From Hydrolagus colliei (taxonomy: Eukaryota), in assembly GCA_035084275.1 (NCBI GenBank), contig CM068763.1, forward strand, positions 10,850,001 to 10,914,000: a DNA stretch of 64,000 nt. The letters are read 5' to 3'. Shown here piece after piece: positions 9,234 through 63,488 of this stretch. The position numbers and the translations under genes were made by a program. A model generated the notes under the pieces. It made no database searches, was not told the DNA's origin, and worked only from the letters and a program-made list of their open reading frames with translations. Positions within the stretch are counted from its first letter, which is position 1. The number at the start of each line of letters is the position of its first letter.

Positions 9234-9286
9234 ATGAAACGTCTGTTGGATGCTCTGGTTATATTTGGCTTCAGTTCATTGGTTGG
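9234..9286 (+). CDS. Gene A signal-peptide exon (MKRLLDALVIFGFSSLV)
   Basis: Preceded by the same TTTTGTTGACAG|GTT acceptor and AGACAAAGTG leader as the SP exons of B-F. Confidence 0.7.
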
Positions 9287-10439
9287 GTAATATCTTAGTT
9301 TGGTCATGTATAAAGTGACATTGTGTGTAGGAAGTGTGGCCTCACTACTGCTGTTATTACAACTCTCAGCAATAAAAATCACACAGTATTGTTTCTTCAT
9401 AACAACAAGAACAACAAATTGATAACAGTCCTTGCTTTTGATATAGCGCTTTTCACATCTTCTAGATCTCTGAAACAATATACTGGAAAGTGAATTGACT
9501 GAACATTTGTGGGCAAAACGCGGCAGCCAATTGCGCATGGTAGTGTCCCCACAAACAGTTGTGGATCAAAGTCACCATTTTTTCTTGAGGGATTATTATC
9601 AGGCGTGTGAGATAACAAATTAGACTCGTAGAGCGGCTTTCACATGGGAAGACATCCAAAGGCTGGACAGTCAAGGATTTGGATCTGAGTTGGGGGTTGG
9701 AATCAGGAAGGGTGGAAGGTGGGAGGGTGGCCGAAGGCGTGGTTTAAGAGGAAGGTCTTGAGACATGCCATCAAGCAGGCAAAGGAGGTGAGCAAGGCAA
9801 AGACTATGGGATGGATATTATTATGGGTTGGAGGCTGAAGGTGCAACCATTTGAAGGGATGGATTTTCAAGGTTTTGAATAATATGTATTTGATTTTGGA
9901 ACCATATGATGGAGTTGTGGTGTATTATATTCACAGCATGCAGACTGGTAACGTGCAATGAAGAATCTGCTTGGTTTAGTTGCCTTCAGTTTGGTGTTGG
10001 GTAAGTTTTAAACGGCCAATGATTTTCTTGTTAACAAAACCCTTTATTGTATTAAATCATTGAGATTCCACTCCACACCAAGGCCGTTCAGTCTATCGTG
10101 TAGGAGTATTCACTTTTGATGTGGTGCTTTTTACCCAGGAGGATGTCTTAACATTTACTATAATATGTAGTGACTGTGTTTTGTTTGGAGGCCAAGCTAA
10201 TTTGCAACTGGCTGGCGTGTAGATATAACTGGGACACTCAATCCATGTGCAGTAAAATCACCTTTTTAACCACTTCATGGCTCCAATGACTAACTGTAAC
10301 TTTAGTACATTATTATTATAGATTATTATGAAATGTTCAGCAGGTATACAGTACAGCCATATCCACCTGGGAGTATATTGTGCACAGCGTTTGAGATGTT
10401 TCAATAATGTCAAAACTCCATATGAAATATATCTAATTA

Positions 10440-10637
10440 CAGTAAAAGCCCGTTTATCCAGCAACCTCTGACCAATGCCGGTTACAGCACGTGCCGGATA
10501 TTCGTCAGAAAACACAATTTTTTTTTTTTAATTTAATGCATTTTTCCAGATAAATTCTGATTACCGGTAATCGAATGTGGACTTTTTTTTGCGATGCCGT
10601 AAACGGAAGTTACGGTTGATCGGGTGCCGGATAAACC
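10440..10637. mobile_element. pogo/Tigger-like MITE (right TIR truncated)
   Basis: TA-CAGTAAAAGCCCGTTTATCC at the left end and a partial GGATAAACC at the right; the body is homologous to 5270-5390. Confidence 0.5.
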
Positions 10638-10788
10638 TTTCTAATTCCTGGTTTACACCAGGTTGACTTTTAAGAAGAATATGAAGTGGAGAAAACAAAA
10701 TTTACAGTAATTTGGATGTAAAAATACAGCAAGTCTTACACGTCACTTTGCTTGTTCTCACTTGTTTTTTTTTATCTCTACTTGCTAG

Positions 10789-11136
10789 ATGGATTTGCCT
10801 TCCAAATAACACGAATAACCGCAATTCAAGGCCAACAAACTGTGCTGGAATGTCACTTGAGTGTTTATGGCGAGCCGTGTATAAAACCAACTGTCATCAC
10901 CTGGAGCTGTGTGAAGACCGAGGAAATCGTTCACGATTTTCACGATGGAAACAATTCACTCGGTCACCAGAGTCCTCGCTATTCAGGCCGCACAAACCTT
11001 TTCCCTGAAAAAATACCACTTGGAAACATCTCATTGAAACTAGAAAGAGTGAGACTGCAAGATGGGGGAAAGTACGAGTGTTTTGCTATATGCTTGGGTG
11101 TACCTGTTATACATACAGTCTCTCTTGTAGTGACAG
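10789..11136 (+). CDS. Gene A IgV exon
   Basis: TAG|AT acceptor and ACAG|GTATGT donor, phase 1/1. V-set motifs: VLEC, ITW, QSPRYSGRTNLFPEKIPLGNISLKL, DGGKYEC. Confidence 0.9.
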
Positions 11137-11212
11137 GTATGTATCTGATTTGTACTTTGTGTTAAAATATTTATTTCGCGTGAGAAGCCTTCTTGGTTTC
11201 CATAATGGTGCA

Positions 11213-11585
11213 GGCCCCAGCGTGGCTCAGTTGGTTGAACTCTTGTCTCCGAGTCAGAAGGTTGTGGGTTCAAGCTCCTCACAGGGACTTTGTTGACCCT
11301 CCGATGCAGTGCTGGGAATCTACTGCATTGTTGCAGTTGCCATCGATCAGGAGAGAAGTTCAACTGAGGTCCTATCTGCCTGTTCAGGTGGACGTTAAAG
11401 ATCCCCACGGCATTAGTCTTAAAGAGAAGGGAGTTTCTCCCAGTGTCCTGGCCAACCATTTCATGGCGGTTTGTAGGGCAAACATTGCACAAGTTGGCTT
11501 CCGAGTTGGCCTACAAATTCACAGTCTGTACCTCCCACAGTGAGATCCCGTAAGGCGCTTTGACATATCTGAACACATGTAATAA
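11213..11585 (+). mobile_element. DeuSINE (SacSINE1/AmnSINE1-type) in gene A intron
   Basis: tRNA head (GTGGCTCAGTTGG...GGTTCAAGC) followed by GAGGTCCTATCTGCCTGTTCAGGTGGACGTTAAAGATCCCCACGGC...GGAGTTTCTCCCAGTGTCCTGGCCAAC, recognised as the conserved Deu domain. Confidence 0.75.
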
Positions 11586-11795
11586 GACAGAATATTAACA
11601 GAATCGTTGAAGCATTTTGATGTAACATCATTCAAAAAAAAATTCAAATAGCCATATAAGTAGTCGTTGTAACAGCAGGTAAATGAATGCACCATAGAAC
11701 TGGGTTTAAACTAAAATTGGTGATAGTTACTGTAGAAGTCCAGGTTGGCACTGAAAATACTATCTAAGAATTATATTTTGTTTTTGTTTTTATAG

Positions 11796-11953
11796 AAATG
11801 GCAACTGGAGAAACAGTGAAAAACCATTGGATTGTTCCAGTCATTGTGATTTCCATCTGTTTACTGATAATAATAATAATCATCATCATTTTAAAAGGAC
11901 AAATCAGAATGGACAAAGCACTACATGCTGAATCACTGATCCTTCCGACATGA
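11796..11953 (+). CDS. Gene A TM/cytoplasmic exon
   Basis: TTTTTATAG|AA acceptor (phase 1); encodes EMATGETVKNHWIVPVIVISICLLIIIIIIIILKGQIRMDKALHAESLILPT*. NHWI(V)P matches the TM exons of C and E. Confidence 0.75.
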
Positions 11954-13269
11954 GAGGCGCTGTATACATGTAATTATGTTGTAGTTTTACTGGGACGCTG
12001 CTGTGCGCAATTGTTTGTCGAGCTTTGCCCACAAATATACAGTCAATTCACTTTACAGCATATTTTGTGAAGCGCTTTGAGGCATGGAACGTGCAATATC
12101 AAATGCAAGGATTGGTATTATTGTATATACTGTATATATGTAAATACTGTAAAAAAATTACTAAATAGATTAACTTTAACATAGAGTAACTTACTTCTTT
12201 TTTGTGTCCATTGCGAAATGGCTCACACGGTTGGCTGCCGTGTGTGTGTGCCCTTTGTACTGTACAACACAATGCCATGGGTGTGTTATAATTGGGTTAT
12301 TCTTGAGACCTGGGTTCAATTCCAGGCAGGGTGCAACCTGGGCAAGTTTCCTTATTCCACACACAAGTCTGATAATAATCCCTCAAAAAACCCCCCACAG
12401 TAATTTGGTCATTTCATACCACGACTGTTTGTGGGGGGACGCTGCTGTGCGCAACTGGCTGCCTCGTTTCATCCACAAATATATACAGTCAGTTCACTTT
12501 ACAGTATCTTCTGTGAAGTGCCTTGGAGATGTCTGGAAGATGTGAAAATCACTTTATCAAATAGGCAAAATATTATTATTTTCAATGCCAACCTTTAGAG
12601 TAACACAGCAAACATTTTAACACAATTTTAACTACATTTGCCCTTAAGTCTCACAAACTTTATCATCAAAATGTTTATTTCCAGAATGTAGATTTCAGTG
12701 AAACTTTTTAAACTATTTTTATATAAGAAACTGTCCGCCAGGCTCTCTCTTACACACAGAGAGACTCTCACACACACATAGAAATTCTCTCTAGACACAG
12801 AGAGACTCACAGAGACTCAAACACATAGAAATTCTTACACAGATACTCACACACACACTTAGACAGACACACACACACATACTCATACACATATACAGTC
12901 ACTCACCCTCTTTCTGAAGAGAGACACACTCAAACAAAGGTTAGAGAGATTCCCCCCTCACTGTGTTGTCTGGGGGGGGGGATGTCTGTCTGTTCACTGA
13001 CTGATTGACTCTGACTTTCCCCCAACACAAAGCTCAACATCACATAACACACAGAAGCCACAGTCAGTGACACAAACTGCTAAAGGCTGCTCAGAGAATA
13101 ACTAACTCAATCACTAACACCAACCTGTTTAACCGGTTAATCTCACCGCTTCCTCTCTGCTGTAGCTGGTGGAATGGCTCTTAAGAGTTTGGCTGTTGTG
13201 TGTGGTTTCACTTCATCCTGTACAATACGCGTCATGGGAAAATGGGTGTGTTTAATTGAGATGTGTTTA

Positions 13270-13625
13270 TTAGCAACCGATATACCGGTAATAATAATTT
13301 GAGATAGCGCTTTTCACGTCTTCTAGACTGTGTCTCAAAGCGCTTCACGGAGTATCCTGTCAAGTGAATTGACTGTATATTTGTGGGCGAAACGCGGCAG
13401 CCAATTGCGCACAGCAGCGTCCCCCCCACAAACAGCCGTGGATTGAAAATGACCGATTTTTATTATTGTGTTTATTTTTGAAGGGATTATTATTAGGCGC
13501 GTGTGTGTGTGTGTGTGTGAATGGGTATGAAGTAAGGAAACTTGCCCAAGGTTTCGAACTGATCTACCTGGATTTGAACACAGGTCTCACACTTGTAAGA
13601 TGAGCGAGTGCTCTAACCGCCCAGG
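13270..13625 (-). mobile_element. tRNA-derived SINE
   Basis: Same body and tail as 262-589, with a (TG)n expansion in the linker. Confidence 0.8.
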
Positions 13626-14292: not shown

Positions 14293-14329
<37 letters not shown>

Positions 14330-16209: not shown

Positions 16210-16660
16210 TGTGTGTGTGTGTGTGTGTGTCTCTGTATGAATTTCTATGGGTGGGTCTCTCTGGGTGTCTATGTGTGAGTGTCTCTGTGTGTTTGTGTGT
16301 CTCTGTATGTGAGTGTCTTTGTGTGTGTTTGTCTCTATGTGTGTGAATGTCTATGTCTATGTGTCTGTGTGTAAGTGTCTATGTTTGTATCTGTGTATGT
16401 GAGTGTCTATGTCTGTGTGTCTCTGTGTGTGTGTGAGTGTCTATGTCTGTGTGTCTCTCTGTGTGTGAGTGTCTATGTCTGTGTGTCTCTGTGTGTGTGA
16501 GTGTCTATGTCTGTGTGTGTCTCTGTGTGTGTGAGTGTCTATGTCTGTGTGTCTCTGTGTGTGTGAGTGTCTATGTCTGTGTGTCTCTGTGTGAGTGAGT
16601 GTCTATGTCTGTGTGTCTCTGTGTGTGTGAGTGTCTATGTCTGTGTGTGTGTGTGTGTGT
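16210..16660. repeat. TG-rich compound minisatellite (unit about 30 nt, GTGTGAGTGTCTATGTCTGTGTGTCTCT)
   Basis: The unit is directly visible more than 10 times in tandem. Confidence 0.9.
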
Positions 16661-17680: not shown

Positions 17681-17689
17681 ATTCTATAA

Positions 17690-18685
17690 AGTCACAGATT
17701 CGCCCACGAGTGGAAATAGTTTTTCTCTATTTGCCCTGTCGAAACCCCTCATGATCTTATAAACCTCTATTAGGTCTCCCCTCAATCTTCTCTGCTCCAG
17801 AGAGAATAACCCTAGCCTATCTAGCCTCTCCTCATAGCTGAAGTCCCTCAATCCTGGCACCATCCTAGTAAATCTTCTTTGTACCCTTTCCAATGCCTTC
17901 ACATCCTTTCTGTAGTGTGGTGACCAGAATTGAACACAGTATTCCAGCTGAGGCCTCACCAAAGTCTTATAGATGTTAGTCAGCACTTGCTGACTTTTGT
18001 ACTCTATACCCCTATTTATAAAGCCTAGTATCCCATATGCCTTCTTAACAGCCTTGTCTACCTGTCCTGCCACCTTCAACGAGTCACTAACACAAATCCC
18101 CAGGTCTCTCTGTTCCTTCACACCATTGAAAATTGTACTATCTAGCCTATATTGCCTCCCTTCATTTCTTCTCCCAAAATGCATCACTTCACACTTCTCT
18201 GCATTAAACTTCATCTGCCATGTGTCTGCCCACTTTACCAATTTGTCTATATCCTCTTGCAGATGGCTACTATCCTCCTCACTATTTACTATTCTCCCTA
18301 ACTTAGTGTCATCTGCAAACTTGGAAACTGTGCTCCGTACACCCAAGTCCAGATCATTGATGTAGATTACAAAGAGCGATGGTCCCAAAACTGATCCCTG
18401 TGGCACACCACTGCTCACTTCCCTCCAGTCTGAAAAACAGCCGCTCACTACAACTCTCTGCTTTCTGTCTCGCAGCCAGTTGTGGATCCACGCTGCCACT
18501 TTCCCTTTTACGCCGTGGGCCTTTAATTTCCTAATAAGTCTCTCATGTGGCACTTTGTCAAATGCCTTTTGAAAGTCCATGTAAACTACATCAACTGCGC
18601 TACCATTATCCAGCCATTCCATTACCTCATCAAAAAATTCTATCAGATTTGTAAGGCAAGATTTGCCTTTAACAAATCCATGTTG
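17690..18685 (-). mobile_element. CR1 LINE ORF2 reverse-transcriptase fragment (open frame)
   Basis: ORF 17684-18712 contains [39 protein letters not shown] and LERVQRRFTRM. 5'-truncated, no endonuclease domain. Confidence 0.95.
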
Positions 18686-19262
18686 ACATCTAGAAGATGT
18701 GAAAAGGCGCAAGGGTTATTATTAGTATTATTATTGTATATCGCCTTCTGTATCACTTGTAGCTTTCCCCACTAATAGCCATAGCCATTTGGGGAATTTG
18801 TGGTAGAATTCCCTGAAACCAAAATGATTTGAATGTCCAGTAATTTTATAATAGTAGCATTACGAAAGTAATGTTAATTATTGTCAAATCTAGCTACCAA
18901 ACTTCTATTTTCATCAGCCACTTTGTCTCATATAACTCATTTTGTGGCAATTCAGGCAACCCAACGAGTGATAAAATCTTTAGGGTATTAGTTTAGGGTA
19001 TTTCACATCAGTAAATTCATGCTTTTTCATGGTCACCTCCCCCCCCCCCCCCCCCCCTCCTGCCCACTCCCCCCCCAACTCCCACTCCCCCTGGCTTCCG
19101 AGCCATTGTGAGGCGCTCTGAGGCACTGACCAGTGTGGAGGGCGCGATATCTACGCAAGTCGTTGGTTTTTCTTTCTTTTCCCTCTCCTGAAATCTATCG
19201 TGAGGATCTATTCTCAGTTGGAGGCACGGTTGACATCAGAGCAACACCAGACAGAGCAAGTT

Positions 19263-19594
19263 CATTCCACTCGTGGGTGAATCTGTGACTCATGGTCACA
19301 GATTTAAAATAGTTTCAAGGCGCAGTAGAGGGGAGCTGAGGAGAATTTTTTTCACTCAGCGAGTTGTTCGAATCTGGAATGCATTGCCTGAAAAGGTGGT
19401 GGAGGCTGATTCGATAACAACTTTTAAAAGGGAATTAGATCTTTATTTAGGGAGAACGGGTCTATTAGGCTATGGGGAGCGGGCAGGGCAGTGGGATTGA
19501 ATCGCTCTTTTCAAAGAGCCGGCACAGACTAGATGGGCCGAATGGCCTCCTTTTGTGCCGTAAAATTCTATGATTCTATGATTCTATGATTCTA
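19263..19594 (+). mobile_element. CR1 LINE 3' end with (CTATGATT)n tail
   Basis: ORF 19273-19500 (GESVTHGHRFKIVSRRSRGELRRIFFTQRVVRIWNALP), followed by the terminal CTATGATT repeats. Confidence 0.9.
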
Positions 19595-19766
19595 AGTTCC
19601 AAGGCCATGAGATTGGGAATAGACACACACTGTTCATTCCTAGCAAGGTTAAGATTAACTCTGTGTTAATTTCTATATTGACAAGGTGAAAGGCGGAAAT
19701 GGACTCAGTGTTTACCAGGTTTTGTTGCTGCTTTTTGTTGACAGGTTGACAACAAGACAAAGTGGG

Positions 19767-19818
19767 ATGAAAACTCTTCTACCTGTTTTGGTGGCATTTG
19801 GCTTCAATTTGGTGGTTG
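19767..19818 (+). CDS. Gene B signal-peptide exon (MKTLLPVLVAFGFNLVV)
   Basis: ATG after the TTGACAG acceptor; donor G|GTAAGT. Confidence 0.85.
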
Positions 19819-22800
19819 GTAAGTACTGTATTCTTCATTTGGTAGTTTTTATTCCCTTCCGACCTGTTTTGCAATGAGGTCGGATTATTGTGTATTGGTT
19901 TATTGTTTGAGGATTACAAAGAGAGCTATTTTTATTTAGTGCTGTTCTGCTGAAAGCGTGTGCGTATATTATAGTACGTGGGTGGAAACACACCCAACCT
20001 GATAGGGTGTGTGGCTGTTCGCACGTCAGCGTCCACGCATTGTGTGCAGGTATCAGGAACTGTAACTTGCATTTATATATCTTCCTCACCGTGGAGGTCT
20101 GAAGGTGAGGAAATGTGTGCAGTAGCCACTATCATTAGAATGAATTTCTAGACACAAATGATCATGTTATAACAGGGTGGGCATCTAGTTCCTACGGTAA
20201 ACTGATAACTGGACCCTGGCTTAACTTGTCGATAACACTTAAATCATCAATAGCATGGCCACAATTATGGTACGTTTGTATTTCTACCTAACCTGTATAG
20301 TATTTGAAAAACTCTTAATAATAATACTGGAATTTGATATACCGTTTTTCGCGTCTTCCAAACGTCTCAAAGCGCTTCACAGAATATACTGGTAAAGTGA
20401 ATTGATTGACTATTTGTGGGCAAAACGCAGCAGCCAATTGCGCACAGCAGCGTCCCCACAAATAGTCGTGGATTGAAATGACCACATTTTTATTGGGGAG
20501 GGGTGGGGGTAGTGGCAGGGGGTTTCTGAGGGATTATTATCAAGCATGTATGTGTGGAGTAGGAAAACGTGCTCAAAGTTTCATCCTGACCTGCCTGGAA
20601 TTGAACTCAGGTTTCTCGCTTACAAGCCGTGTGCTCTAACCACTGAGCTACAGCATTCCATATATTGCTGTATGTTGTTGACGGATGCTGGTCACTTTCT
20701 TTTATTTTGCAAAACGTCCACAACACTTTGAATTATGTGGTTGATCGAAAACTCCCAAGTAATTGTCCCCAGCTTTCCATTGTTATTTATTTACCCGAAT
20801 TTTGTTGACGTCAAAAATACCTGCCTATCAAAGATTCTTCTGTGTTGGTTTATTTCAAGATTACCCGGTGAACTCAGGGGGGAATCCATAGTGTAAATTA
20901 ATTTAAAATTAACATGACCCTGTTCAAAACAGGAAGGGAGTTTCTCCTGAGGTTCTGAACTATAATGGTCGCTCACTTTAGCGCTGTTTGACCTACCTGC
21001 CTCCCACAAAACTCAGTTCCTGCGCTTTACAGTTCACCCTGTCAAGCCCTTTTATTGTTATATAAATAATAATATAAATGATTATTTATACAATAATAAT
21101 CCTTGCATTTTACATAGCGCTCTTCATGTCTTCCAGACGTCTCAAAGCGCTTCTCAGTATATACTGCAGAGTCAATTGACTGTACATAGTTATGAATCAA
21201 GGATTGTGGCCACCTATCTGTTGCGATGTCTGAGGTCTCACTGTTTGGCTGAGACGATAAACCGAGGGCATCGATAAATGAAAATTCATCCTTTGCGACC
21301 AGGAAGGGAGCTGGGCCAAAATGGTGTGTGCCGTTTCCATGTCGCAAGCCGGCATTCATTGAATTAACCCTAACCCCAAGTACACAAAACATCAAGTCCA
21401 AACAGATCTCCACCAGCACCATCCCCACCCCACCCCCCACCCCCAACCATCCCATGTGTCTCTCAAATTGTAATATCCATCAAAGGGACACATGTGCTTC
21501 ACTGAATAATCTCATGTTCTGACCCAGCTCATCAATATAATGTGTCCACAGCTGGATTTGAAGTGCGCGTCTCAAGAGAACCAGTAATTGCCATCCACGG
21601 ACACGATGCAGTTCTGGGATGCAGTTTTACTCCCAGTGGAACGTCAACAGAGGGCGTTGTGATCACCTGGCAGCGTGAAGACAATCAGGAGGTGGTTTAC
21701 AGTTATTACTACAACGAACACCAGCTCGGTCAACAGAGTCCTCGCTACGCAGGACGCGCCAGTCTATTCCCGGAGGAGATTATAAAGGGAAATGCCTCGT
21801 TGATGCTCAAAGGAGTGAGACCAGAGGACAGCGGAGAATACATGTGTTACGTCAGCACGAATAGTGCAGATGCCAAAGGAACAATCTCTCTAAAATTCGC
21901 AGGTACGTGTTTATTCAAGCATCCCGAGACATTATATTTGTTGTATTTGTGTCACTTGGTTTGTGGCTGGGAATGAAGTCTCTTCTCTATGCGACTTGAG
22001 TTTATCAGTAAAGTAACATTTGTAAATGTTCCCAAACCCATTGGATGCATTGGATCCAGCGCTTTTCACATCTTCCAACAACAACAAAGTTACATTTGTA
22101 CAGCACCTTTCACGGAGGATGTCCCAAGGCGTCCGTCTCAAAGCGCTTCACAGAATATACTATCAAATGAATTGACTGTATACTTTGTGGGTGAAGCGCG
22201 GCAGCCAATTACGCACAGCAATGTCCCCACAAACAGTTATTACATAGTGAGCTCCTAACATTTGTCATTAAGACTTTTCCAAGTTCATCATCACTGCTTG
22301 TACCTAAAGCCTGTTCTTCTATTCCTCAGCATATTACAAGGAACCCATTTTATCGATCCAATTAGGAACAAATGCAACACTTTTTCGATTTGAATCCCAA
22401 GGCTTCCCTCAAGCTGTTATTTCCTGGTTCGATGAACAACACAAGGATATTTCTTCGCAAACGGACACTTTTTTCCAACGGAATGCAGACGGCCTGTATT
22501 CAGTGAGTAGCACTCTGGAAATTGCTGACACGAGAGCAAACTCTTCGAACTACACATTCACGATAAGCAATGATGTCTTGGGACAATCACTTTCCAGGAG
22601 ATTTGTATTTACTCCAGGTGAGTTATTTTACCCGAACTCTGCAATCCGTGAATCCCTCCACCTCCCGAAGCATTCCAATCCCGACCCCAGCTCAGGTCTG
22701 AAACATTTACTGTCCAGCCCCTTGGGACATTGGGACTCCTGAAGTGAAAGGCGCGATGCAAATAATAATAATAATCCTTGCATGTGACATAGCGCTTTTC

Positions 22801-28740: not shown

Positions 28741-28769
28741 GAGTCTTGTGCCTGCTCTTTAATCCCACT

Positions 28770-50552: not shown

Positions 50553-52960
50553 ATGAAAACTCTTCTGCCTGTTTTGGTGGCATTTGGCTTCAGATTAGTG
50601 GTTGGTAAGTATCTTTATTTGGTAGTTTTTGTTCCCTTCCGACCTGTTTTACACGAGGAAGGTTTATTGTTTGAGGATTACAAGATGAGCTACGTTTAGT
50701 AATAGAAGGTGAGGAAGTGTGTACAGTAGCCACTGTTGTTAGAATGAATTTCTAGACACAAATGATCATGTTATAACAGGGTGGGCATCTAGTTACTACA
50801 GTAAACTGATAACTGGACCCCGGCTTAACGTGTCAATAACACTTAAGTCATCATGCTGTCAGTGGCAACAATTAGTTTTGTATTTATACTGAACCCGTCA
50901 CTCAGGAAACTCTTCACTAAACCTTATCCTTGGAGCGCCACATAAGTGCAAGTCCTTACTGGACTAATTGAGAGCTCACCAGATAATAATAATAAGCTTT
51001 GCATTTGATATAGTGCTTTTCACATCTTACCGATGTCTTATCGATGTCTCAAAGCATTTCACAGAATGTATTGTAAAGTGAATTGACTATACAGCATATA
51101 TACATATACACACAGACACATATATGTGGGTGAAACACGGCAGCCAATTGCACACAGCAGTGCCCCTACAAACAGTCACAAGTACACAAAACATCAAGTC
51201 CAAACAGATCTCCCTCCCCGCACCCAACCATCCCATGTGTCTCTCAAGTTGTAATATCCATTAAAGGGACACATGTGCTTCACTGAATAATCTCATGTTC
51301 TGACCCAGCTCATCAATATAATGTGTCCACAGCTGGATTTGAAGTGCGCGTCTCAAGAGAACCAGTAATTGCTATCCATGGACACGATGCAGTTCTGGGA
51401 TGCAGTTTTACTCCCAGTGGAACGTCAACACAGGGCGTTGTGATCACCTGGCAGCGTGAAGACACTAAGGAGACAGTTTACAGTTATTACAAGAGCCAAC
51501 ACCAGCACAGTGTACACAGTCCTCGCTATGTAACACGGACCAGTCTATTCCCGGCGGAGATTATAAAGGGAAATGCCTCATTGATACTCAAAGGAGTGCG
51601 ACCAGAGGACAGCGGAGAATATGTGTGTTATGTCAGCACAAAAAGTGAAGATGCCAAAGGAACAATCTCTCTACAATTCGCAGGTACATGTTTATTCACT
51701 CCGAGACATTAAGTCTGGATGAACGACATTATACAAATAGAAGTTGTATTTGTGTCACTTTTCACAGAATATACCGTCAAGTGAATTGACTGTTTACTTT
51801 GCTGGTGAAATGCGGCAGCCAATCACAGCAGCGTCCCCACAAACAGTCGTGGACAGGGTCGTGTTGGTGGTTGAGGGGTAGCTAGGGGTGGGATTTGGAG
51901 TTCAGATTTATTTTATTTATGTAGCATTTTAGAGCGTCCAGAATTTAGTCATTCAGAAATACATTCATTTCTATGATTGTTATTTATTCAAGAGTAAATT
52001 TAGATCGCGGTGGAATCTCTTCCCCTACAAAGCTTTAACAATGTAATATTAGTGAGGCTATAATACAATATAAGTATAACATTTGTCATTAAGACTTTTC
52101 CAAGTTCATTATCACTGCTTGTACCTAAAGACTGTTGTTCTATTCCCCAGCATATTACAGGGAACCCATTTTATCGATCCAATTAGGAAAAAATGCAACA
52201 CTTTTTCGATTTGAATCCCAAGGCTTCCCTCAAGCTGTTATTTCCTGGTTCGATGAACAACACAAGAATATTTCTTCGCAAACGGACACTTTTTTCCAAC
52301 GGAATGCAGACGGCCTGTATTCAGTGAGTAGCACTCTGGAAATTGCTGACACGAGAGCAAACTCTTCGAAATACACATTCACGATAAGCAATGACGTCTT
52401 GGGACAATCACTTTCCAGGACATTTGTATTGACTTCAGGTGAGTTATTTTACCCGAACTCTGCAATCCGTGAATCTCTCCATTTCCCAATGCATGGCTGC
52501 ACATTCTGTTCTCTTGCACTGGCACTTAAGTTCTGGGTACACATTTCGCCCACACAATGTACAATCAGTACACATTACAGTGTATTTTCCAGGAAGTCTT
52601 GACAACATTAGGTTCAAATTACTATATATTTTTTAAAAATTATTGTGAGAAACTACTACAAAGCTCAGCACTGAAAGCACGGGTCATGGAATAAAATAGA
52701 TTTATTTTGTGTGTTTTACAGAAATCCAAAAGGAAACAGAATCGCCTGCCATTAGAAATCACTGGATACCGGCAGTCATTCTCATGTTTATTGAATTAAT
52801 AGTCATTTTAATTCTGGTGATGGTGCTGTTCATAAAGCATCGTAACTCAACAGAACATAAGAAATGCCATCAAAATGGACAATGGACGACACCACAAAAC
52901 CGTCAACCACATTGTACTAATTTGAACCCCAGCACTGTCTGGCCTCCAGATGTTCTGTAG
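50553..52960 (+). CDS. Gene E: B7-family type I membrane protein, 309 aa (314 from the upstream ATG at 50538)
   Basis: join(50553..50604, 51333..51683, 52151..52438, 52722..52960) = 930 nt, GT-AG phase-1 introns, open frame. Confidence 0.9.
51333..51683 (+). CDS. Gene E IgV exon
   Basis: ORF 51323-51712; CACAG|CT ... GCAG|GTACAT. Confidence 0.95.
52151..52438 (+). CDS. Gene E IgC exon (cysteine-free)
   Basis: ORF 52135-52602; CCCAG|CA ... TCAG|GTGAGT. Confidence 0.9.
52722..52960 (+). CDS. Gene E TM/cytoplasmic exon
   Basis: ORF 52709-52960; WIPAVILMFIELIVILILVMVLFI, tail ending PHCTNLNPSTVWPPDVL*. Confidence 0.85.
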
Positions 52961-54133: not shown

Positions 54134-56596
54134 AGCGTATACTGTGAAGCTCTTTGAGACGTCTCGAAGACGTCAAAAAGCGCGATATCAAATGCAAGGA
54201 TTATTATAAATATATCTGCGCGCACAGCACCCCCCTCTGTAGAGAAGCCATATTACAGTGTCCGACAGACATACAGGACACCCAGGAGGCATTGAGAAGA
54301 CATTACAACAAACGCAAGGTTTATTTTGTTTATTGAAATGCACACAGTAAACCAGGCTGACTGACTCATAACACCAGCTAGCTATTTGGGTCTTAAAAGA
54401 CTTCCATTGCCTTCCAAGTAACAATGAAGCACTTTATAATAAGAGTTCTACGAGATGAAAATTTGTTCTTTTAAACAATTATAAGAATTATCAGCAACCG
54501 ACACACATGGTCAATTATTTTTTGTGAAAAAAAAGTATTATTTAAAGTATTCCTTTAAGTATTTTCCGTGAATAAACAATAAGATCTTCCCTTTATGTGG
54601 CGGCCATCACACAAGACATTGCACAGCGGCCAAACGAGTGGGAGAGAGAGCAGCAATCGGCAGGGGGAGAGGCGTAGCTCCTGTAGCTCAGTGGTTAGAG
54701 CAGTCGCTTTACAAGCCTTAGAATTTTCGAATCCAGGCAGATCAGGGCAGAACCTTGGGCAAGTTTCCTTTCTCCGCACGCCTAATAATAATCCCCCACC
54801 CACCTCAGCCACCGAAAACCAAACAAACGCAATAATAAAATTGGTCATTTCAACCCACGGCTGTGGGGGACGCTGCTGTGAGCAATTGGCTGCCGCGTTT
54901 CGCCCGCAAATATACAGTCTATTCACTTTACAGTATATTCTGTGAAGCGCTTTGAGACGTCGATAAGATGTGAAAAAGCTCTCTATGAAATGCAGGGATT
55001 ATTATTATTATGTTGCTCATCATTAAATCATGCTTCAGTAAGCACTCGCAAATTAATTCAGGAGGAACAAAAAGTTAAAAGACGCAAGCCCGAAAATCTG
55101 TTTGCTGCCGTTACTTGCTTCGATCCACGCAGTAACTTGCAATACAAATGTAATGGCAGTCCAACGCAGTGTTTCAGATTAAGTGAAAACCCGTAGAGTT
55201 CAGAACCCAGCAGCCACGATAGGAAATCTAGACCCAGACAGTCACACAGACAAACTTCCAAGTTAGAGATTTCCCCCCTCACTGTGTTGTCTGGGGGTGT
55301 CTGTCTGTTCACTGACTGACTCTCACTGTCCCCCAACACAAAGCTCAACATCACTTAATACACAGAAGCTGCAAAAGTGAGTGACACAAACCTCAAAAGA
55401 CTAACAACAGAAAATAACTAACTCAATCACTAACACCAACCTGTTGATCTTCCCCTTTAAGGCGAAGTGTTCAAACACAGCAATCTGATTGACTGACAGC
55501 AAACTACAGGAACACAACTTCCACAATCTTTTTGACTCATACTGACCAAGGTTTCACCCTGATCAGCCTGGATTCAAACACAAGTCTCATGCTTGTAAGG
55601 CGAGTGCTCCAGTGTATTTTGTTGTTGTTTGTTGAGCGACCTGGGTTCGATTCCAGGCACGGTGAAACCTATGATAAGTTTCTTTGCTCCACATGCTGGG
55701 AGTCACACAACCGCTGAAATGGACTCATTCTTCACACGGGCATCTCTATCCTGCTCTCCTCTGTTTCCCCCACACTCTGGAACTCCATCCCGCGAAACCT
55801 TGGCCTCACTTCCTCCTGACGTGAAAGTCCCTCTCTAAATGTAATTGTGTTGTTGTTGTTGCCTGGTCTACGCTGCCTTCACAGCTTGGACGGTGAAACT
55901 AGATGGCGTTTCACAACTTTCCTAACTTTTTCTTCCTCCCAAGTTAATTGCGAGGCTTTGAATGAAGATGATTTAAGGATGAACAACATGTGACGCACTG
56001 TGTTGTGCCTCTCCCCCTGCCGATCGCTGCTCTCTCTCCCACTTGTTTGGCCGCTGTGCAATGTCTTGTGTGATGGCCGCCACATAAAGGGAAGATCTCA
56101 TTGTTTATTCACGGAATAAATATTTATGGAAGAAACTTTTTGTATCAAAAAATAATTGACCGTGTGTATTTGCTGCTAATTCTGGTGATTTGTCTTTAAA
56201 AAAAGGAATTTTAATCTTGCAAAACACTACTATAAAATGCTTCATTGTTACATGGAAGATCATGGAAGTCTTTTATGACACAAATAGCTAGCTGGTGTTT
56301 TTTTCACATGAGTCAGTCAGCCTGGTTTACTGTGTGCATTTTAATAAACAAAATAAACCTTGCGTTTGTTGTAATAACAACAACAACAACTTCAATTTAT
56401 ATAGCGCCCTCCACGCCGGACAGCGTCTCAGAGCGCTTCACAGTAGTGGATCCCGGGACCGAGCCAGGGGCAGGGACAGAAAGGTGACCAAAAGCTCTTC
56501 TCAATGCTCCCTGGGTGTGCTGCATATGTCTGTCAGACACTATAATGTGGCTTCTCTACAGTGGGAGGTGCTGTGTGCGCAATTATATTTATAATA

Positions 56597-56706
56597 ATAC
56601 CACTTGAAAACATCTCATTGAAACTAGAAAGAGTGAGACTGCAAGATGAGGGAAAGTACCTGTGTTTTGCTATATGTTACACAAATAGTCTCTCTTGTAG
56701 TGACAG
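56597..56706 (+). pseudogene. Gene A-type IgV exon 3' fragment with downstream intron
   Basis: ATACCACTTGAAAACATCTCATTGAAACTAGAAAGAGTGAGACTGCAAGAT...GTGACAG|GTATGT with an internal deletion; 56707-57300 closely copies 11137-11730. Confidence 0.85.
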
Positions 56707-56782
56707 GTATGTATCTGATTTGTATTTTGTGTAAAAACGTTTATTTCGTGTGAGAAGCCTTCTTGGTTTCCATAATGGTGCA

Positions 56783-57155
56783 GGCCCCAGCGTGGCTCAG
56801 TTGGTTGAACTCTTGTCTCCGAGTCAGAAGGTTGTGGGTTCAAGCTCCTCACAGGGACTTTGTTGACCCTCCGATGCAGTGCTGGGAATCTACTGCATTG
56901 CTGCAGTTGCCATCGATCAGGAGAGAAGTTCAACTGAGGTCCTATCTGCCTGTTCAGGTGGATGTTAAAGATCCCCACGGCGTTTGTCTTAAAGAGAAGG
57001 GAGTTTCTCCCAGTTCCTTGCCAACTATTTCATGGCTGTTTGTAGGGCAAACATTGCACAAGTTGGCTACCGAGTTGGCCTACAAATTCACAGTCTGTAC
57101 CTCCCACAGTGAGATCCCGTGAGGCGCTTTGATATATCTGAACAAATGTAATAAG
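56783..57155 (+). mobile_element. DeuSINE (duplicate of 11213-11585)
   Basis: Nearly identical to the gene A intronic copy, including the flanks. Confidence 0.75.
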
Positions 57156-58337
57156 ACAGAATATTAACAGAATCGTTGAAGCATTTTGATGTAACAAATC
57201 ATTGAAAAAAATTCAAATAGCCATATAAGTAGTCGTTGTAATAGCAGATAAATGAATGCACCATAGAACTGGGTTTAAACTAAAATTAGTGATAGTTACT
57301 GTTGACCCTGAAAATACATCGAGTTTCACCATCCAACCCAGCTGTGAAGGCAGCTGTGTAGACCAGAGAACAGAAGAGAGCAGGATAGAAACGAACTTGT
57401 GTGAAGAATGAGTCCATTTCAGTGGTTGTGTGACTCCCAGCATTATCACCTGGACAACACAGAACAGAAAGGGTTAATGGCTCATCGAGTCAGTTCTTTA
57501 CACAAGTCACTCAGACATGTGGCCTACGCAATATAGCCAATACCCAGTCATTTTTGTCGTCCCGTCTCAAAATATTGTCTCAAAAGGCTCCATATGGTCA
57601 GGAATAGAATGGCAGGGAACAGCCCCTGAGTCCTGATCTTGGTGAAGATCAGATACAATAATAATCCTTGCGTTTGATATCGCAGCTGATCACAAATTCG
57701 AGTCGTCTCAGAGCGGCTTCACAGGATATCCTGTAAAATGAATTGACTTTATATTTCATGTTACATCTCTCAATGTATTTATTGAGTGACTGAATTGTTA
57801 TATATTTTGGAAGAAATTCGTATCCCTGGAATAAGTATTGACTATCAACTTGTTACTACTAGGTAAACAGAGGCCTGTGTGTGTGTGTGGAGTAGAGCAT
57901 ACCCATATCCTCCAGAAGAGCCAATTGAAAATAAGTCCTACATTTAGCTCAGTGGTTAAAGCACTTAGTGCAAATGGCAGCAAATAACAGGTCCAGGTAG
58001 CAGTCATTCAGTGGGTGGTGCATTGAATAATCTGATTTGTCCTTTTTCTATTGGTTTCATTTTACAAGTAATTACATGAAATAAAACGAAAATATTATTA
58101 TTATCCAGTAACCAATCACAATGCCTCCAACTACCTCATGGTTTCTTGGTGTCTCAGTAAAAACAAATTCTCAGTGTCTTAGTGCCTGCAGGCTTCTACA
58201 GTAATTGCATCTCTCATAATTTAAACCCAGTCCTATGGTACATTCATTTACCTGTTAGTACAATGACTACTTGAATACTTTTCAATGATTCGTTACATCA
58301 CAATGCTTCAAAAACATAAAGTCTTTCTATATCATAA

Positions 58338-59126
58338 TAATCTTTGATGATGGGTCCATCGAAGAGGAGAGCTGTGAGGCGAGACTTGAAGGAGGCCAGG
58401 GAGGGGGAGAGGGTCTTTGGGATGGAGTTCCAGAGGTTGGGGACAGAATGGCTGAAGGCTCACCCACCAATGGTTGGGTGGGTGGGTTGGGGGACGTGGA
58501 GTAGGCCAGAGCCTGATGAACAGAGGGGGCGGGCATGTTGGTAAAGGGATAGGAGGTCATGGTTGTAGGGTCGGGCGAGGTTGTGGAGGACTTTAAATGT
58601 GAGGATCAGGATCTTGAATTGGATCCTTTGGGGAGCCAATGTAGTCGAGCAAGGATGGGGGAGATGGGGTCATGGAGTTTGGAACAGTAAAGGATACGGG
58701 CCACAGAGTTCTGGATTATCTGCAGCCTGTGGAGGGCCGACCAGCAAGACATTTGCATAATCGAACCAGGATGTAATGAAGGCATGGATGAGGTTTTCAG
58801 TGGCTTTGAGGTTGAGGAAATGGTGGAGTCGAAAAATATTGCATAGGTGGAGAAAGCCTGAGTGAGTCTTTCCTTGAATATGGGGGAGGAAGACAGTTAA
58901 TGTCGAACAAGACAACTAGGTTTCTGACAGACTTGATTAGGTTGAGTGAGTAACCATGGAGGCTGAGGCAGCCAGAGCCTGATACAAGAAGGTGCTGGCG
59001 TGAGCCAATCAGTAGGGCCTCTGTCTTCAACTGTAGAAAGTTAGCTCTCATCCAGGACTTGATGTCTGACCGAGGTAGTCCTAGAGTCGAGAGTAAATGC
59101 AGAGAGATAGAGTTGGATGTCATCCA
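58338..59126 (-). mobile_element. Old L2 LINE, 3' part (host of the nested insertion; continues at 60915-61075)
   Basis: Colinear with 27745-28575; interrupted after GGATGTCATCCA. Confidence 0.85.
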
Positions 59127-60914
59127 ACAACAACAAATTATACTTATAACGCGTCTTTCACGTCGGGAGGACGTCCCAAGGCGCTGCACAGGAGGCATGT
59201 GACCCGAGCTGGGAGGGGAGTGTACGGGAAGGGGTGAAACACGAAGGGGAGGTCGAAGAATTCAGGGTGGAACAAAAGGCACGGTCGAAGAGGAAAGTCT
59301 TCAAACCGGCCTTGAAAGAGGAAAGGGAAGAAACGAGACGGAGGGATTGGGGGATGGAATTCCATAGGATTGGAGCAGAAAAACTGAAGGCCCGGCCTCC
59401 GATGGTGGGGCGATTCGGGCGGGGGGCTTGGAGCAGGCCAAGTCCTGGTGAACGGAGGGTCCGGGTGGGCTTGTAGGGGGAAAGTAAATTGGTTAAATAG
59501 GGTGGGGCAAGGCCATGTAAGGCCTTCAAGGTGAGGACGAGGATCTTGAACTCGATCCTCTGGAGGATGGGGAGCCAGTGGAGACGGGCGAGGGTGGGGG
59601 TTATATGGTCGCGGATGCGGGTGCGGGATAATACACGGGCTGCAGAGTTTTGGATGACCTGCAGCCTGTGAATGGAGGAACTGGGGAGGCCGACGAGGAG
59701 AGAATTTCCATAGTCCAGCCGTGAGGTGATGTACGCGTGCACGGGTGTTTCGGCAGCGTGGGGGGTGAGATAGTTGCGGAGCCTGGCAATGTTGCACAGG
59801 TGGAAATAAGCGGTGCCGGTCAAGGCACGGATATGGGGGAGGAAGGAAAGTTTTTGGTCGAACATGATGCCGAGGTTCCTGATTGGCTTTGTGAGGTGGA
59901 GAGTACAGCCTTGGATGTTGAGGCTGGCAGTGCCTGATGTGCGGACGCGCTGGCTTGAGCCGATCAGGAGGGCCTCGGTCTCACTCATGTTCAATTGCAG
60001 GAAGTTGTCCCTCGTCCAGGACTTGATGTCGGACAGACATGCTGTTAGAACATCGATGGTCTGGGGGTTGAGGGATGAGGCAGAAAGGTACAGTTGGGTG
60101 TCGTCTGCATACATGTGGATATTTACCCCATGTCTACGGATGACATCGCCCAGAGGGAGCGTGTAAAGGGTGAAAAGGAGGGGGCCGAGGACAGAGCCCT
60201 GAGGGACACCGTGAGAAACTGTGCGGGGGTTTGAGGAAAAATCATTGGAAGATACAAAGTGTAAATGGTGGGTCAGGTAGGAATGGAACCAGTCAAGGAC
60301 TGTGCCTTGAAGGTTGAGGTGGGAGGAAAGACGTTGGAGGAGGATGGTGTGATCGACTGTGTTGAATGCAGCAGACAGGTCAAGGAGGACGAGGAGGCAG
60401 AGGGAGCGTTGGTCACAGGCGGTTAGGATGTCATTTGTAACCTTAACCAGGGCAGTTTCTGTGCTGTGAATAGGGCGGAAACCTGATTGGAGGGGTTCAA
60501 GGAGTGAGTGAGTTGAAAGGAAAGAGCGGAGCTGGGAGGCAACCACTCTTTCAAGGACCTTGGATAAAAACAGGAGGTTGGAGATGGGTCGATATGTTGA
60601 TGGTTGCGACGCATCAAGGGAGGGTTTCTTCAGGATAGGGGTGATGGTGGCTGTTTTAAGGGAGGTAGGGACGGTGCCTGAGGAGAGAGAAAGGTTGATG
60701 GTGTCAGAAATGAGAGGGGCCAAAAGGTGGAGCTGGGTGCGGAGGAGGGGGGTGGGGATGGGGACCAATGAGCACGTGGTGGGTTTCATGGAGATGATCA
60801 TTTTTGTGACTAAAGACGGAGTGGTGGGGTTGAAAGTGTGAAATGGGGGGTGGGTGGGGCTTGAAGTAACGGATGGAGGGGCGGAGGTGGAGGAGAGGTG
60901 GGGGGAGGAAACCG
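59127..60914 (-). mobile_element. Young 5'-truncated L2 LINE with intact RT frame
   Basis: Open frame with [36 protein letters not shown] and YADD motifs, a 3' tail and (TTG)n; absent from the paralogous site at about 28576. Confidence 0.95.
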
Positions 60915-61099
60915 CGGATATGTGGAAGTTAACCCCATGTCTGCAGATGATGTCACCAAGTGGGAGCACATAAATGTTGAAAGATAGGGGGACAAGGACA
61001 GAGCCCTGGGGGACCCCACGGGTGACAGTGCGAGTGCGAGTGCGGGAGCTGGAAGAATCATAGAATCTTACAGCCCATCGAGTCTTGTGCCTGCTCTTT

Positions 61100-61520
61100 A
61101 ATCCCACTCCCCAGCTCTCTCCCCATAACCGCGCAAACCCGTCCTCCCCAAATAAGGTGCCTCCACCACCTTTTCAGGCGATGCATTCCAGATTCGAACA
61201 ACTCACTGGGTGAAAACATTTCTCATCATCTCCTCTCAGCTTCTTTTAGAAGCTATTTTAAATCTGTGACCACAAGTCACTGATATGCCCACCAGCGGAA
61301 ACAGTTTTTCTGTTTTGCTGTGTTAAATACCCTCGTGATCTTAAAAATCCTACTACGTAACCTTCTCTGTTCCAATGAGAATAAACCTGGCCTTTCCTCA
61401 TAGCTGAAGTCCCTCATTCCTGGTACCATCCTGGTAAATCTCCTCTGCCCATATTGCCTCCCCTCATTTGTCCTCCCAAAATCCATCACCTCACATTTCT
61501 CCACATTAAATTTCAAGAGA
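61100..61520 (-). mobile_element. Degraded CR1 3' fragment (duplicate of 28770-29190)
   Basis: Colinear sequence match to 28770-29190. Confidence 0.8.
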
Positions 61521-62492
61521 AACCGTTGGTCACACCCACATCCACCGACTCGTCCAGAAACAAAATTGTCACACGGTTTTGCCCGCAAGCTACATAAGTG
61601 TGTGAGAGAGAGAGAGAGAGAGCCTGGCAGACAATTTATTTTCTACATCAAATGCAAGTATTATTATTATTATTAAACATTAAACAGGCTGATGTTAGTG
61701 ATTGAGTTTGTGAATCTCCAGAAAAATAATGTGTCTCACAACCTGCATGTTTATTGTGGTTCTTGTGTTGGGTTTAGGATTCACATCAATAGATTTATAC
61801 AGAATAATAATGTAGATATATAATGATGAAAGATTTATACATAGATATACAATAATAATATTGTTCATTAGGGTCATCCACCGGGAAGATACACTGAGCA
61901 GTCAATAGGGGAAAGGCAGAGGAGGGGGACAGGGGAGAGGGAGGAGGGGGACAGGGGAGAGGGAGGAGGGAAGCAGGGAGGAGGGGGAGAGAGGAGAGAG
62001 GGAGGAAGGGGAGAGGGGGAGAGGGGAAGAGAGGGGAGAGGAAGGAAGGGGGGAGAGGGAGGAGGGGGACAGGGGAGAGGGGTCAGGGGAGAGGGAGGAA
62101 GAGGAGAGGGACAGGGGAGATGGAGGGAGACAGGGGAGAGGGAGGGGTGGGGGAGACAGGGGGAAGGGAGTGGGCGGTACAGAAGAGAAGGAGGGGAGGA
62201 GGATGGAGACAGGGTGTGGAGTGGGGGAGACATACAGACAAAGACAGACAAAACACACCAAGAGAAAACAAGAGAAAACATGCAGGGACTTTCTCTTTAA
62301 GGCTCAGCTATCATGCAGAGGATCTAGTTTCAGAGTGAGAGGGAGGAGGTGGGGGGGAGGGGGGGGGGGGGGGGGGAGGGTTATACCGGATGTGTCATTG
62401 AATGTGTGAATCTGTATATTTGCAAACCACACATATCAGAAGCCAAACTGTTAGTGACACAGTATTGCACCAGAACTACATCAGTGTGGGGG

Positions 62493-62526
<34 letters not shown>

Positions 62527-63436
62527 CTTTACTACCTCAAATGCAAGTACCTGTATTATTATTATTATTATTAACACATTACACAGGCTGGTGTTAGTGA
62601 TTGAGTTAGTGATTCTCTGTGGATCGCCCCCAAAAATAATCTGTTTCTTGTATTCAGTTTAGGATTTATATCATTAATTAGATTGATACAGATAGAGCTA
62701 TAACAATAATACAGATAGATCTGTAATAATAATAATTATATAGATATATTGCCCCCAAAGGCACTATAACAGGCTGGAGTTTAGTTATTTTAAATAAGGC
62801 TTCTCTATATGTGTTTCTGACTTGACAAGGAGGTGAGTGTGGCTGGTGTGGCTGTGAGAGTCTCTGTGTCTGTGTGTGTGAGTGTATGTCTGTGAGTGTG
62901 TGTCTCACGACTGTGAGTCTCTATGTGTGCCTATGAAGCAATCTCCACTCGTTTGTGTGTGTGTGTTTGAGTCTCTAAGTACTGTACGTGCATGTGTCTG
63001 TATGCCTGTGTGTGTGTGTGTGTGTGTGTGTGAGAGCGTGTGTCTCGCTGTGTGTCTCTGTGTATGTGAGAGAGCCTGGCAGACAGTTTATTATATCAAT
63101 AATATTTTAAAAGAGTCGTATTTGAGTGTGGCTGAGAGGAGGCAGCGAATTTGGTGCGGGAAAACAGTGAAACAGTGGCAACGTTTTACTGCGTTCAATC
63201 TTAATATAGAAGCGAAACTGACAGAGAGTTCCAAGGACATTAGACTGAGAACAGACAGAGACTGTTCATTCCTGGCAAAGTTTTAACACAAGTGATCAAC
63301 CATTTCCTACAGTTGAGAAATTGCATCTTTCTGTATTTACAAAGTTAAAAGAAACAGTGAAAGGTGGAGATGGTCCCGGTGTTTACCAGGTGTCGTTGTT
63401 GCTTTTTGTTGACAGGTTGACATGAGACAAAGTGGG

Positions 63437-63488
63437 ATGAAAACTCTTCTGCCTGTTTTGGTGGCATTTGGCTTCAGATTAGTGGTTG
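63437..63488 (+). CDS. Gene F signal-peptide exon (B7-family copy continuing beyond the window)
   Basis: Encodes the same peptide as the gene E exon (MKTLLPVLVAFGFRLVV), with the same acceptor and donor and a near-identical intron to the window end; upstream ATG at 63422. Confidence 0.85.

Follow-up and report, generated by a model that had tools for sequence, protein, structure and literature searches.

A tandem and inverted cluster of CD276 (B7-H3)-like genes in the holocephalan Hydrolagus colliei

In a 64,000-nucleotide stretch of the Hydrolagus colliei genome (assembly GCA_035084275.1, contig CM068763.1, positions 10,850,001–10,914,000), hereafter referred to as the window and used as the coordinate frame for the positions given below, I identified four complete genes similar to CD276 (B7-H3). 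Three of these, labeled B, C and E, lie on the plus strand, and the fourth, D, on the minus strand. They are accompanied by a related locus A, by the start of a further gene F, and by two broken fragments of the A type (ψA), in the order A>, B>, ψA<, C>, D<, assembly gap, E>, ψA>, F>, where the arrowheads give the orientation. An earlier note on this DNA had listed at least six related loci (A to E and the start of F) and two pseudo-fragments, an inventory that tblastn and boundary reading confirmed. In the explanation that I favor, to which I assign a probability of about 0.8, the cluster would be the amplified holocephalan orthologue of the single-copy "CD276 antigen" locus of Callorhinchus milii, and this amplification would yield variants of a B7-H3-type ligand.

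The window consists of repeat-rich vertebrate DNA with a GC content of ∼42%. I located the IgV and IgC exons with tblastn, using IgV and IgC peptides taken from the list of open reading frames (ORFs), and read the exact boundaries off the sequence. This revealed five intact IgV exons (A, B, C, D and E), four IgC exons (B, C, D and E) and the two broken A-type IgV pieces. Each of the genes B–E possesses four coding exons, for the signal peptide, the IgV domain, the IgC domain and, together in the last exon, the transmembrane (TM) helix and the tail up to the stop codon. All are bounded by AG and GT, the introns are all in phase 1, the reading frames are open, and the lengths of the IgV (351 nt) and IgC (288 nt) exons are constant. 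The exon plan of signal peptide, IgV, IgC and TM with tail, joined by phase-1 introns, had been proposed earlier for the whole family; it holds for B–E, and fails for locus A, which has an out-of-phase leader donor and in which no IgC exon was found. The NCBI model of the C. milii "CD276 antigen" gene also has four coding exons (amino acids 1–17, 18–134, 135–230 and 231–307), and its TM helix and tail are encoded by one exon, which supports the single TM-and-tail exon modeled in B–E.

Gene B comprises a leader exon at 19767–19818, an IgV exon at 21552–21902, an IgC exon without a Cys pair at 22330–22617, and a TM-and-tail exon at 23206–23444 that runs to the stop and encodes a TM Glu and a tail with the motif SCYTKL, all on the plus strand. 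Its leader starts at the second Met (MKTLL), which is the start common to C. milii; the upstream ATG that serves as first start in C–F reads ACG in B and is thereby lost. Gene C, also on the plus strand, has its leader at 34064–34130, IgV at 34461–34811, IgC at 35286–35573, and the TM-and-tail exon at 35856–36058, which encodes Gln instead of the TM Glu and, owing to a frameshift relative to E, a shortened tail; its IgV is the most derived among the copies, 4 of the 25 near-invariant family positions being changed. On the minus strand, gene D runs from its leader (43574–43640) through IgV (42495–42845) and IgC (41157–41444) to a TM-and-tail exon (40469–40719) that belongs to a divergent 3′ module, with ∼85% nucleotide identity to B, C and E, and that keeps the TM Glu. 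A Val is changed to Glu near the end of the D signal peptide; this substitution, like the Gln and the short frameshifted tail of C, is a possible early sign of loss or change of function. Gene E, back on the plus strand, is made up of a leader at 50538–50604, IgV at 51333–51683, IgC at 52151–52438, and a TM-and-tail exon to the stop, with TM Glu, at 52722–52960. The predicted proteins are 309 (B), 302 (C), 318 (D) and 314 (E) amino acids long. Locus F is represented at the window edge by its leader exon (63422–63488, plus strand) and 0.5 kb of intron, the remainder of the gene lying beyond the window; this region (62430–64000) is 98.2% identical to 49559–51117 in the E region.

The leader ATGs are found at 9234 (A), 19767 (B), 34064 (C), 43640 (D, minus strand), 50538 (E) and 63422 (F), so that D and E are arranged head to head. 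The distances between ATGs are 14,297 bp from B to C, 16,474 bp from C to E and 12,884 bp from E to F, within 0.1 kb of the spacings (14.3, 16.5 and 12.9 kb) previously reported.

The assignment to CD276 was obtained with the spliced E protein. Its best matches in the PDB are CD276 structures, with E-values of 5e-60 (4Ig) and 1e-30 (2Ig), and the other matches are far weaker: BTN1A1 (1e-16), PD-L1 (5e-14) and VTCN1 (3e-12). In the protein database, the top match is "CD276 antigen [Callorhinchus milii]", with 64% identity, followed by shark and ray "CD276 antigen-like" proteins (45–52%); no protein identical or nearly identical to B–E was found there. Pfam identifies a V-set domain in E (2.6e-14) and gives weaker matches to C2-set families, with C2-set_2 above the cut-off and C2-set_3 just below it. 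An AlphaFold2 model, built with 33 family sequences, has predicted local distance difference test values of ∼93–98 across nearly all of both Ig domains, and one long TM helix. Comparison of this model with butyrophilin and PD-L1 ectodomains in Foldseek gave target-normalised template-modeling scores of 0.85–0.87 (2.1–2.9 Å). By these similarity scores the family is CD276/B7-H3-like specifically, closer to CD276 than to other B7 or butyrophilin members. A conserved motif, F-P-x5-G-N-A-S-L...D-x-G-x-Y-x-C, includes an NAS sequon that aligns with the N104 glycosylation site of human B7-H3, reported to be necessary for surface localization (PMC11997214).

A maximum likelihood tree of 46 proteins places B–E in one clade (support 100/99), sister to the C. 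milii CD276 (100/100). Within it C, D and E are grouped together (98/97), and B has the shortest branch of the copies. The synonymous divergence (dS) among B–E is 0.07–0.16, compared to 0.33–0.49 to the C. milii orthologue, indicating that the duplications postdate the split from C. milii. In C. milii, the locus (L001) contains one CD276 gene, followed by an alpha-L-fucosidase (FUCA) gene and a BTB-zinc-finger gene. The left flank of the window is collinear with unique noncoding DNA upstream of the C. milii gene, at 80–83% identity, in blocks that occur in order at 1077–1308, 3525–3822, 7499–7635 and 19468–19870; after these, the exons and introns of B match C. milii at 83–86%. The downstream flank, occupied by FUCA in C. 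milii, falls outside the window. A TG-rich satellite with 32/66-nt periodicity lies upstream of B (16265–16660), and a related one upstream of the C. milii CD276 (L001, 4615–6883), so that the satellite position is conserved between the two holocephalans.

On the tree, the divergence and the collinearity, the relationship of B–E to the C. milii gene is many-to-one, a lineage-specific expansion in another holocephalan and not 1:1 orthology. The phylogeny that the earlier note had called for accordingly shows that the copies are not simple 1:1 orthologues of known B7 members. Its proposal of a lineage-specific birth-and-death expansion is borne out by the monophyly of the copies and their sister relationship to one C. 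milii gene, by the collinear locus, by the low dS among paralogues and by the dead or decaying members (A and the two IgV fragments); the duplicates are in tandem, specific to the lineage, and form a monophyletic clade within the species.

The elasmobranch members of this lineage number one per species among the retrieved proteins. Chondrichthyans as a whole possess at least three CD276-like lineages, which can share a chromosome: in C. milii, a distance of 1.6 Mb separates the CD276 gene from its paralogue P0054 (L002, scaffold MU249841.1, 11.51–11.53 Mb), which is without the TM Glu and is flanked by an F-box gene and a multi-EF-hand gene, and two Heptranchias paralogues lie 5.6 Mb apart. 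Either P0054 or the lineage of the window may be the positional orthologue of tetrapod CD276. I considered synteny of P0054 with human 15q24 and dropped it, as its neighbor genes were not identifiable. At the ray locus (L003) and the two Heptranchias loci (L004 and L005) no other called gene was found within 10 kb, the DNA there not having been scanned for unannotated CD276-like exons.

Two features of the predicted proteins set them apart from mammalian CD276, and both proved to be old. In an alignment of all relatives the Cys pair of the IgV domain is universal, but that of the IgC domain is replaced by Phe/Phe in B–E, which consequently have a predicted disulfide in the IgV domain only and not, as mammalian CD276, in both. 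The IgC pair is also missing in 36 of 36 chondrichthyan CD276-like proteins, and in the relatives from Amia, Polyodon and two teleosts, while human CD276 and the mammalian and caecilian HHLA2 possess it. From this distribution, the Cys-free IgC characterizes the examined non-tetrapod relatives, and gives no ground to exclude CD276 membership. A Glu in the middle of the membrane helix (motif x-E-F/L) is found in the CD276 of C. milii, in every elasmobranch lineage member (11/11), and in B, D and E, with Gln in C, and is lacking in the other two chondrichthyan CD276-like lineages. Since both the Cys-free IgC and the TM Glu occur in relatives with one gene, they long predate the expansion and are not signs of a newly evolved receptor family. 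The conservation of the Glu across the sampled cartilaginous fishes suggests a functional contact within the membrane. A literature search returned no direct report of a chondrichthyan CD276 expansion, of a Cys-free IgC in fish B7-H3 or of the TM Glu.

I then compared the copies with one another. Each of B–E retains the full set of 20 family-invariant residues, and the near-invariant positions changed are one in B, four in C, two in D and three in E. The 639 nt of the Ig exons contain no indels, compared to 5.4 per kb in the introns (P ∼0.03 per pair), which argues against the copies being long-standing pseudogenes. The ratio of non-synonymous to synonymous divergence (dN/dS) among B–E is 0.5–1.1 for IgV and 0.5–0.9 for IgC (the pair of B and E gives 2.1 for IgC, where only one synonymous difference was counted), and 0.4–0.5 relative to the C. 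milii orthologue. As judged by these ratios, constraint among the copies is relaxed or mixed. In two of the four comparisons made, the IgV exon has diverged beyond its flanking intron: 9.1% vs 4.3% for C–E (p = 0.006), and 5.1% vs 2.5% for D–E (p = 0.03).

The variable sites of the IgV domain are concentrated on one side: 18 of the 36 sites in the C-C′-C″ strands vary, as do 2 of the 4 in the FG loop, whereas the segments A, A′-B, D-E, E-F and G together vary at only 8 of 66 sites. The variable IgV face described in the earlier note is therefore real and clustered, but its dN/dS is not clearly above 1. The orthologue differs in this region too, and low constraint is thus an alternative cause of the clustering.

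The identities of individual segments are discordant between copies, indicating that segments were exchanged. E is a mosaic in this respect, with intron 1 (97.5% identical) and IgV nearest to D, IgC nearest to B (97.2%), and intron 3 and the TM exon (99.2%) nearest to C. The 5′ regions and leader exons of C–F are 96–98% identical, and intron 1 measures 330, 728 or 1733 bp depending on the copy. The tails are short (∼28–47 residues, counted on the predicted proteins). A motif of the form SxYxxL, resembling an ITIM (immunoreceptor tyrosine-based inhibitory motif), occurs in B only, as SCYTKL; E has Cys for the Tyr, C is frameshifted, the D tail is unrelated in sequence, and the C. milii tail is without the motif, which may be due to chance in B. 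What had been taken for swapped tails is better described as the result of a frameshift of 1 nt in C, of a 3′ module in D that is older and divergent, and of segment exchange.

Locus A differs markedly from these genes. It has a leader exon (9234–9285) similar to those of the other copies, an IgV exon (10789–11136) and, 660 bp downstream of the latter, a TM-and-tail exon with stop (11796–11953) that is without the TM Glu, all on the plus strand. The IgV exon measures 348 nt and is open in frame; it retains the canonical Cys pair and Trp, and is 36–39% identical to the IgV of B–E. Between IgV and the TM-like exon no IgC exon for A was found, either by tblastn with 41 relatives at E-values up to 50 or with a family hidden Markov model on six-frame ORFs. 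The homologous donor position of its leader reads GG, the nearest GT lying 1 nt further (phase 2): with G/GGTAAT in A and G/GTAAGT in the other copies, the good donor is displaced by one base, and the IgV would as a result be out of frame. An in-phase alternative, the very weak site CA/GTTCAT, was considered and rejected as unlikely. With the spliced A protein as query, a word-indexed search of proteins returned no match, and an exhaustive search of representatives with its IgV found no relative above 48% identity, so A is without a close named orthologue. A batoid database protein of 181 amino acids (P0149) has its IgV joined straight to a Glu-bearing TM, the IgC being skipped, an architecture as in locus A; this isoform implies that the phase-1 plan permits IgC skipping, or an IgV-only form.

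Two further pieces of the A type were identified. A pseudo-fragment of the IgV exon on the minus strand (29326–29725), with in-frame stops and frame breaks, is 84% identical to 10830–11224, and a partial copy of the locus on the plus strand (56593–57302) is 93.7% identical to 11009–11733 and retains an IgV coding remnant only at 56597–56677 (3′ part). They sit in the B–C and E–F spacers, which are themselves paralogous, with 27304–29209 matching a LINE-interrupted 57907–61530. In C. milii, an inverted A-type leader relic with its donor GT changed to AT is found on the minus strand (L001, 7168–7360), 2.7 kb upstream of the CD276 gene; the 7 kb on its far side yielded no IgV of the A type. The relic indicates that the A type is older than the split of the two holocephalans, and in sum A reads as a decaying, IgC-less older paralogue.

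The shared upstream blocks of the genes are ∼1.5–3 kb long, the tandem units measure ∼13–16 kb, and one duplication is inverted, giving the head-to-head pair D and E. Repeated segmental duplications, tandem and in one case inverted, built the array, the likely cause being unequal crossing-over among the abundant long and short interspersed element (LINE and SINE) copies of the spacers. Segments were then exchanged between the duplicates, with divergence accumulating mainly in the C-C′-C″ strands and FG loop of IgV; the older paralogue A appears to be decaying, through loss of its IgC exon and an out-of-phase leader donor, and the two IgV fragments of its type are dead. The products of B–E are predicted to be membrane glycoproteins of type I that resemble B7-H3, with a signal peptide, IgV, a disulfide-less IgC, a TM helix with Glu and a short tail. 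They would probably be displayed on cell surfaces and bind a putative lymphocyte receptor through the IgV sheet, and through the ancestral Glu they probably assemble with a partner in the membrane or with one another. What the expansion most likely provides is a set of ligand variants whose binding faces differ somewhat, selection on them being relaxed or in part diversifying; a new receptor class is improbable.

A SINE-like element of ∼300 bp (at least 15 copies, 75–87% identity) is spread over the window, including introns and spacers of the cluster, for example at 260–586, 12204–12545, 13297–13618, 33040–33366, 46017–46487 and 54595–54945, with recurring pseudo-ORFs ("...AAVRNWLPRFAHKY..."); the C. 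milii loci carry copies as well. A LINE ORF on the minus strand (59158–61107), uninterrupted over 649 amino acids and with an RVT_1 match of E 9.5e-39, interrupts the E–F spacer relative to the paralogous B–C spacer, and is therefore a young insertion, possibly still active. A second reverse transcriptase fragment lies at 17684–18712 (minus strand). The upstream block of D contains a 2.1-kb insertion unique to it, within which is a GC-rich minisatellite (44371–45553) with a 28-nt period and ∼41 copies. The Pro-rich ORFs found at 43.8–45.8 kb (43862–45773, up to 569 amino acids) were rejected as genes, as they are read-through of this 28-bp minisatellite.

The cluster contains one assembly gap, of 147 N (46884–47030), which is intergenic and lies in the upstream block of D, between D and E, 3.2 kb from the D ATG and 3.5 kb from the E ATG. 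Self-comparison of the window shows that the left flank of the gap (45989–46883) matches 33335–32454 at 94%, the right flank (47033–47607) matches 32254–31676 at 92%, and a third block (47950–48390) matches 31385–30949. All three follow the order, in inverted orientation, of an uninterrupted block upstream of C, in which the interval between the first two is ∼200 bp, compared to the 147 N at the gap; this collinearity is consistent with continuity across it. Simple, CA/TG-rich DNA follows on the right side of the gap. A family-profile scan in all six frames found no family exon in 43.9–50.5 kb, and no exon or reading frame crosses the gap.

These data bear on the possibility that uncollapsed haplotypes, or mis-joins at the gap, have inflated the number of copies and that the true locus has fewer genes. 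The gap between D and E, the 98.2% identity of the E and F upstream regions and the 96.8–97.5% identity of the D and E arms agree with such an artefact. However, the exons differ by 5–10%, and intron lengths and transposable element insertions differ as well, which is far beyond allelic difference; the minisatellite-bearing insertion is present upstream of D only, and the LINE in the E–F spacer only. The inversion of D relative to C and the inverted block beside E are both within ungapped sequence, so that the head-to-head arrangement is independent of the gap, whose flanks are moreover collinear with the block upstream of C. I therefore regard an assembly artefact as very improbable. A more substantial concern, to which I grant a real though minority chance, is that most duplicates are redundant or decaying, with one functional copy, probably B, which is the positional orthologue, beside the conserved upstream DNA, and the least derived, and C–F drifting neutrally towards pseudogenes. 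The higher dN/dS among paralogues than between orthologues agrees with this, as do the short branch and single near-invariant change of B, the altered TM, tail and near-invariant residues of C, the altered signal peptide of D, and the ongoing death visible in A and the two fragments. It accounts less well for the open frames, complete splice sites and fully retained invariant residues of all four genes, for Ig exons free of indels next to indel-rich introns, and for the near-identity of the C–F 5′ regions and leaders, which suggests maintained promoters. Some of the same observations count against the ligand-variant explanation itself. C, having lost the TM Glu, kept only a frameshifted tail and changed four near-invariant residues, may be on its way to pseudogenization. 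The IgV dN/dS of 0.5–1.1 would fit diversifying selection and relaxed constraint alike, and the synonymous divergence of IgV also exceeds that of the introns, which fits patchy gene conversion equally well as selection. For each copy, expression and splice junctions are predictions by homology with the gene model of C. milii, and the apparent single copy in C. milii rests on 10 kb on each side of the gene and on there being no other annotated C. milii protein in the clade.

The earlier note had likened the cluster to a polymorphic or paired receptor family. On such a reading the copies would be receptors and not ligands, pathogens or polymorphic ligands would drive the IgV faces, and members would differ in signaling via the charged TM residue and their tails. 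Variation concentrated on one IgV face, an IgV exon diverged beyond its introns, the mid-membrane Glu with Gln in C, tails that differ (SxYxxL being present in B and not in E), and an exchange of segments as in KIR and LILR-type families all recall such receptors. Activating paired receptors have a short tail and use a TM Lys or Arg to recruit DAP12, DAP10 or FcRγ, and their inhibitory counterparts combine a nearly identical ectodomain with a long tail that bears ITIMs. The charge found here is acidic, not Lys/Arg, and is conserved in elasmobranch orthologues that number one per species; together with the Cys-free IgC, which is present in all the chondrichthyan and ray-finned-fish relatives retrieved, it is ancestral, and occurs in species with a single gene of the lineage, and so neither can serve as a receptor sign. 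No immunoreceptor tyrosine-based activation motif is present, and among the predicted tails no long ITIM-bearing one is paired with a short one, the tail of C being the product of a 1-nt frameshift; nor is dN/dS clearly above 1. The features cited thus do not support the likeness, and I consider a paired receptor family improbable, so that ligand variants of the B7-H3 type remain the preferred interpretation. A more speculative idea, to which I give little credence, is that the CD276-like lineage with TM Glu is a subunit of a hetero-oligomeric surface complex, as in butyrophilins, and not a passive ligand, and was multiplied here with a diversified C-C′-C″/FG face into a small combinatorial or polymorphic recognition system. 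If true, such a system might serve, for example, the selection or activation of particular lymphocyte subsets.

Few B7 ligands are as conserved as CD276/B7-H3, whose receptor is a matter of continuing dispute. Several recently diverged copies offer naturally occurring variants with which to map the binding face and search for the receptor, and the single-copy C. milii outgroup sharpens this comparison. As an event in immune gene families, the expansion is of an ordinary kind. The two odd features, the disulfide-less IgC and the TM Glu, are old fish or chondrichthyan traits, the Glu spanning the deepest split of living cartilaginous fishes, and the latter points to an unrecognized membrane partner.

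Among known systems, the closest are the chondrichthyan CD276/B7-H3 proteins (C. milii P0001; elasmobranch P0002–P0006), which have the same IgV-IgC-TM-short tail architecture, with the four-exon phase-1 plan in C. milii, and which share the TM Glu and Cys-free IgC with the window copies. The difference lies in number, with at least five tandem and inverted copies in the window, compared to a single copy in C. milii and in each species represented among the retrieved elasmobranch proteins. Mammalian CD276, in contrast, keeps the IgC disulfide, the TM Glu being a feature of the window copies. In mammals, it is exons inside CD276 that were amplified, giving the 4Ig VCVC form (PMC3172298), whereas whole genes are amplified in the window. 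The butyrophilin, BTNL and SKINT clusters are likewise composed of tandem genes for IgV-IgC membrane proteins that evolve by birth-and-death and gene conversion. Butyrophilins provide the closest structural match to the model described above, and the heteromers formed by neighboring butyrophilin paralogues are a plausible analogy for the TM Glu. However, the window genes are without the intracellular B30.2/PRY-SPRY domain of butyrophilins, and in sequence they are much closer to CD276 than to these, as the PDB matches show.

The numbers of B7-ligand paralogues are reported to be generally stable in jawed vertebrates, with marked expansions in Testudines and Cladistia that involve paralogues related to the PD-L1/PD-L2/CD276/ICOSL, VTCN1/HHLA2 and NCR3LG1 clusters; CD276 itself is reported in all jawed vertebrates, and is more conserved than its relatives (PMC13262535). 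The turtle and bichir expansions are the same kind of event as that in the window. The latter is found in Holocephali, a group not listed in that survey, and is tied to one CD276-like lineage and to one orthologous single-copy locus.

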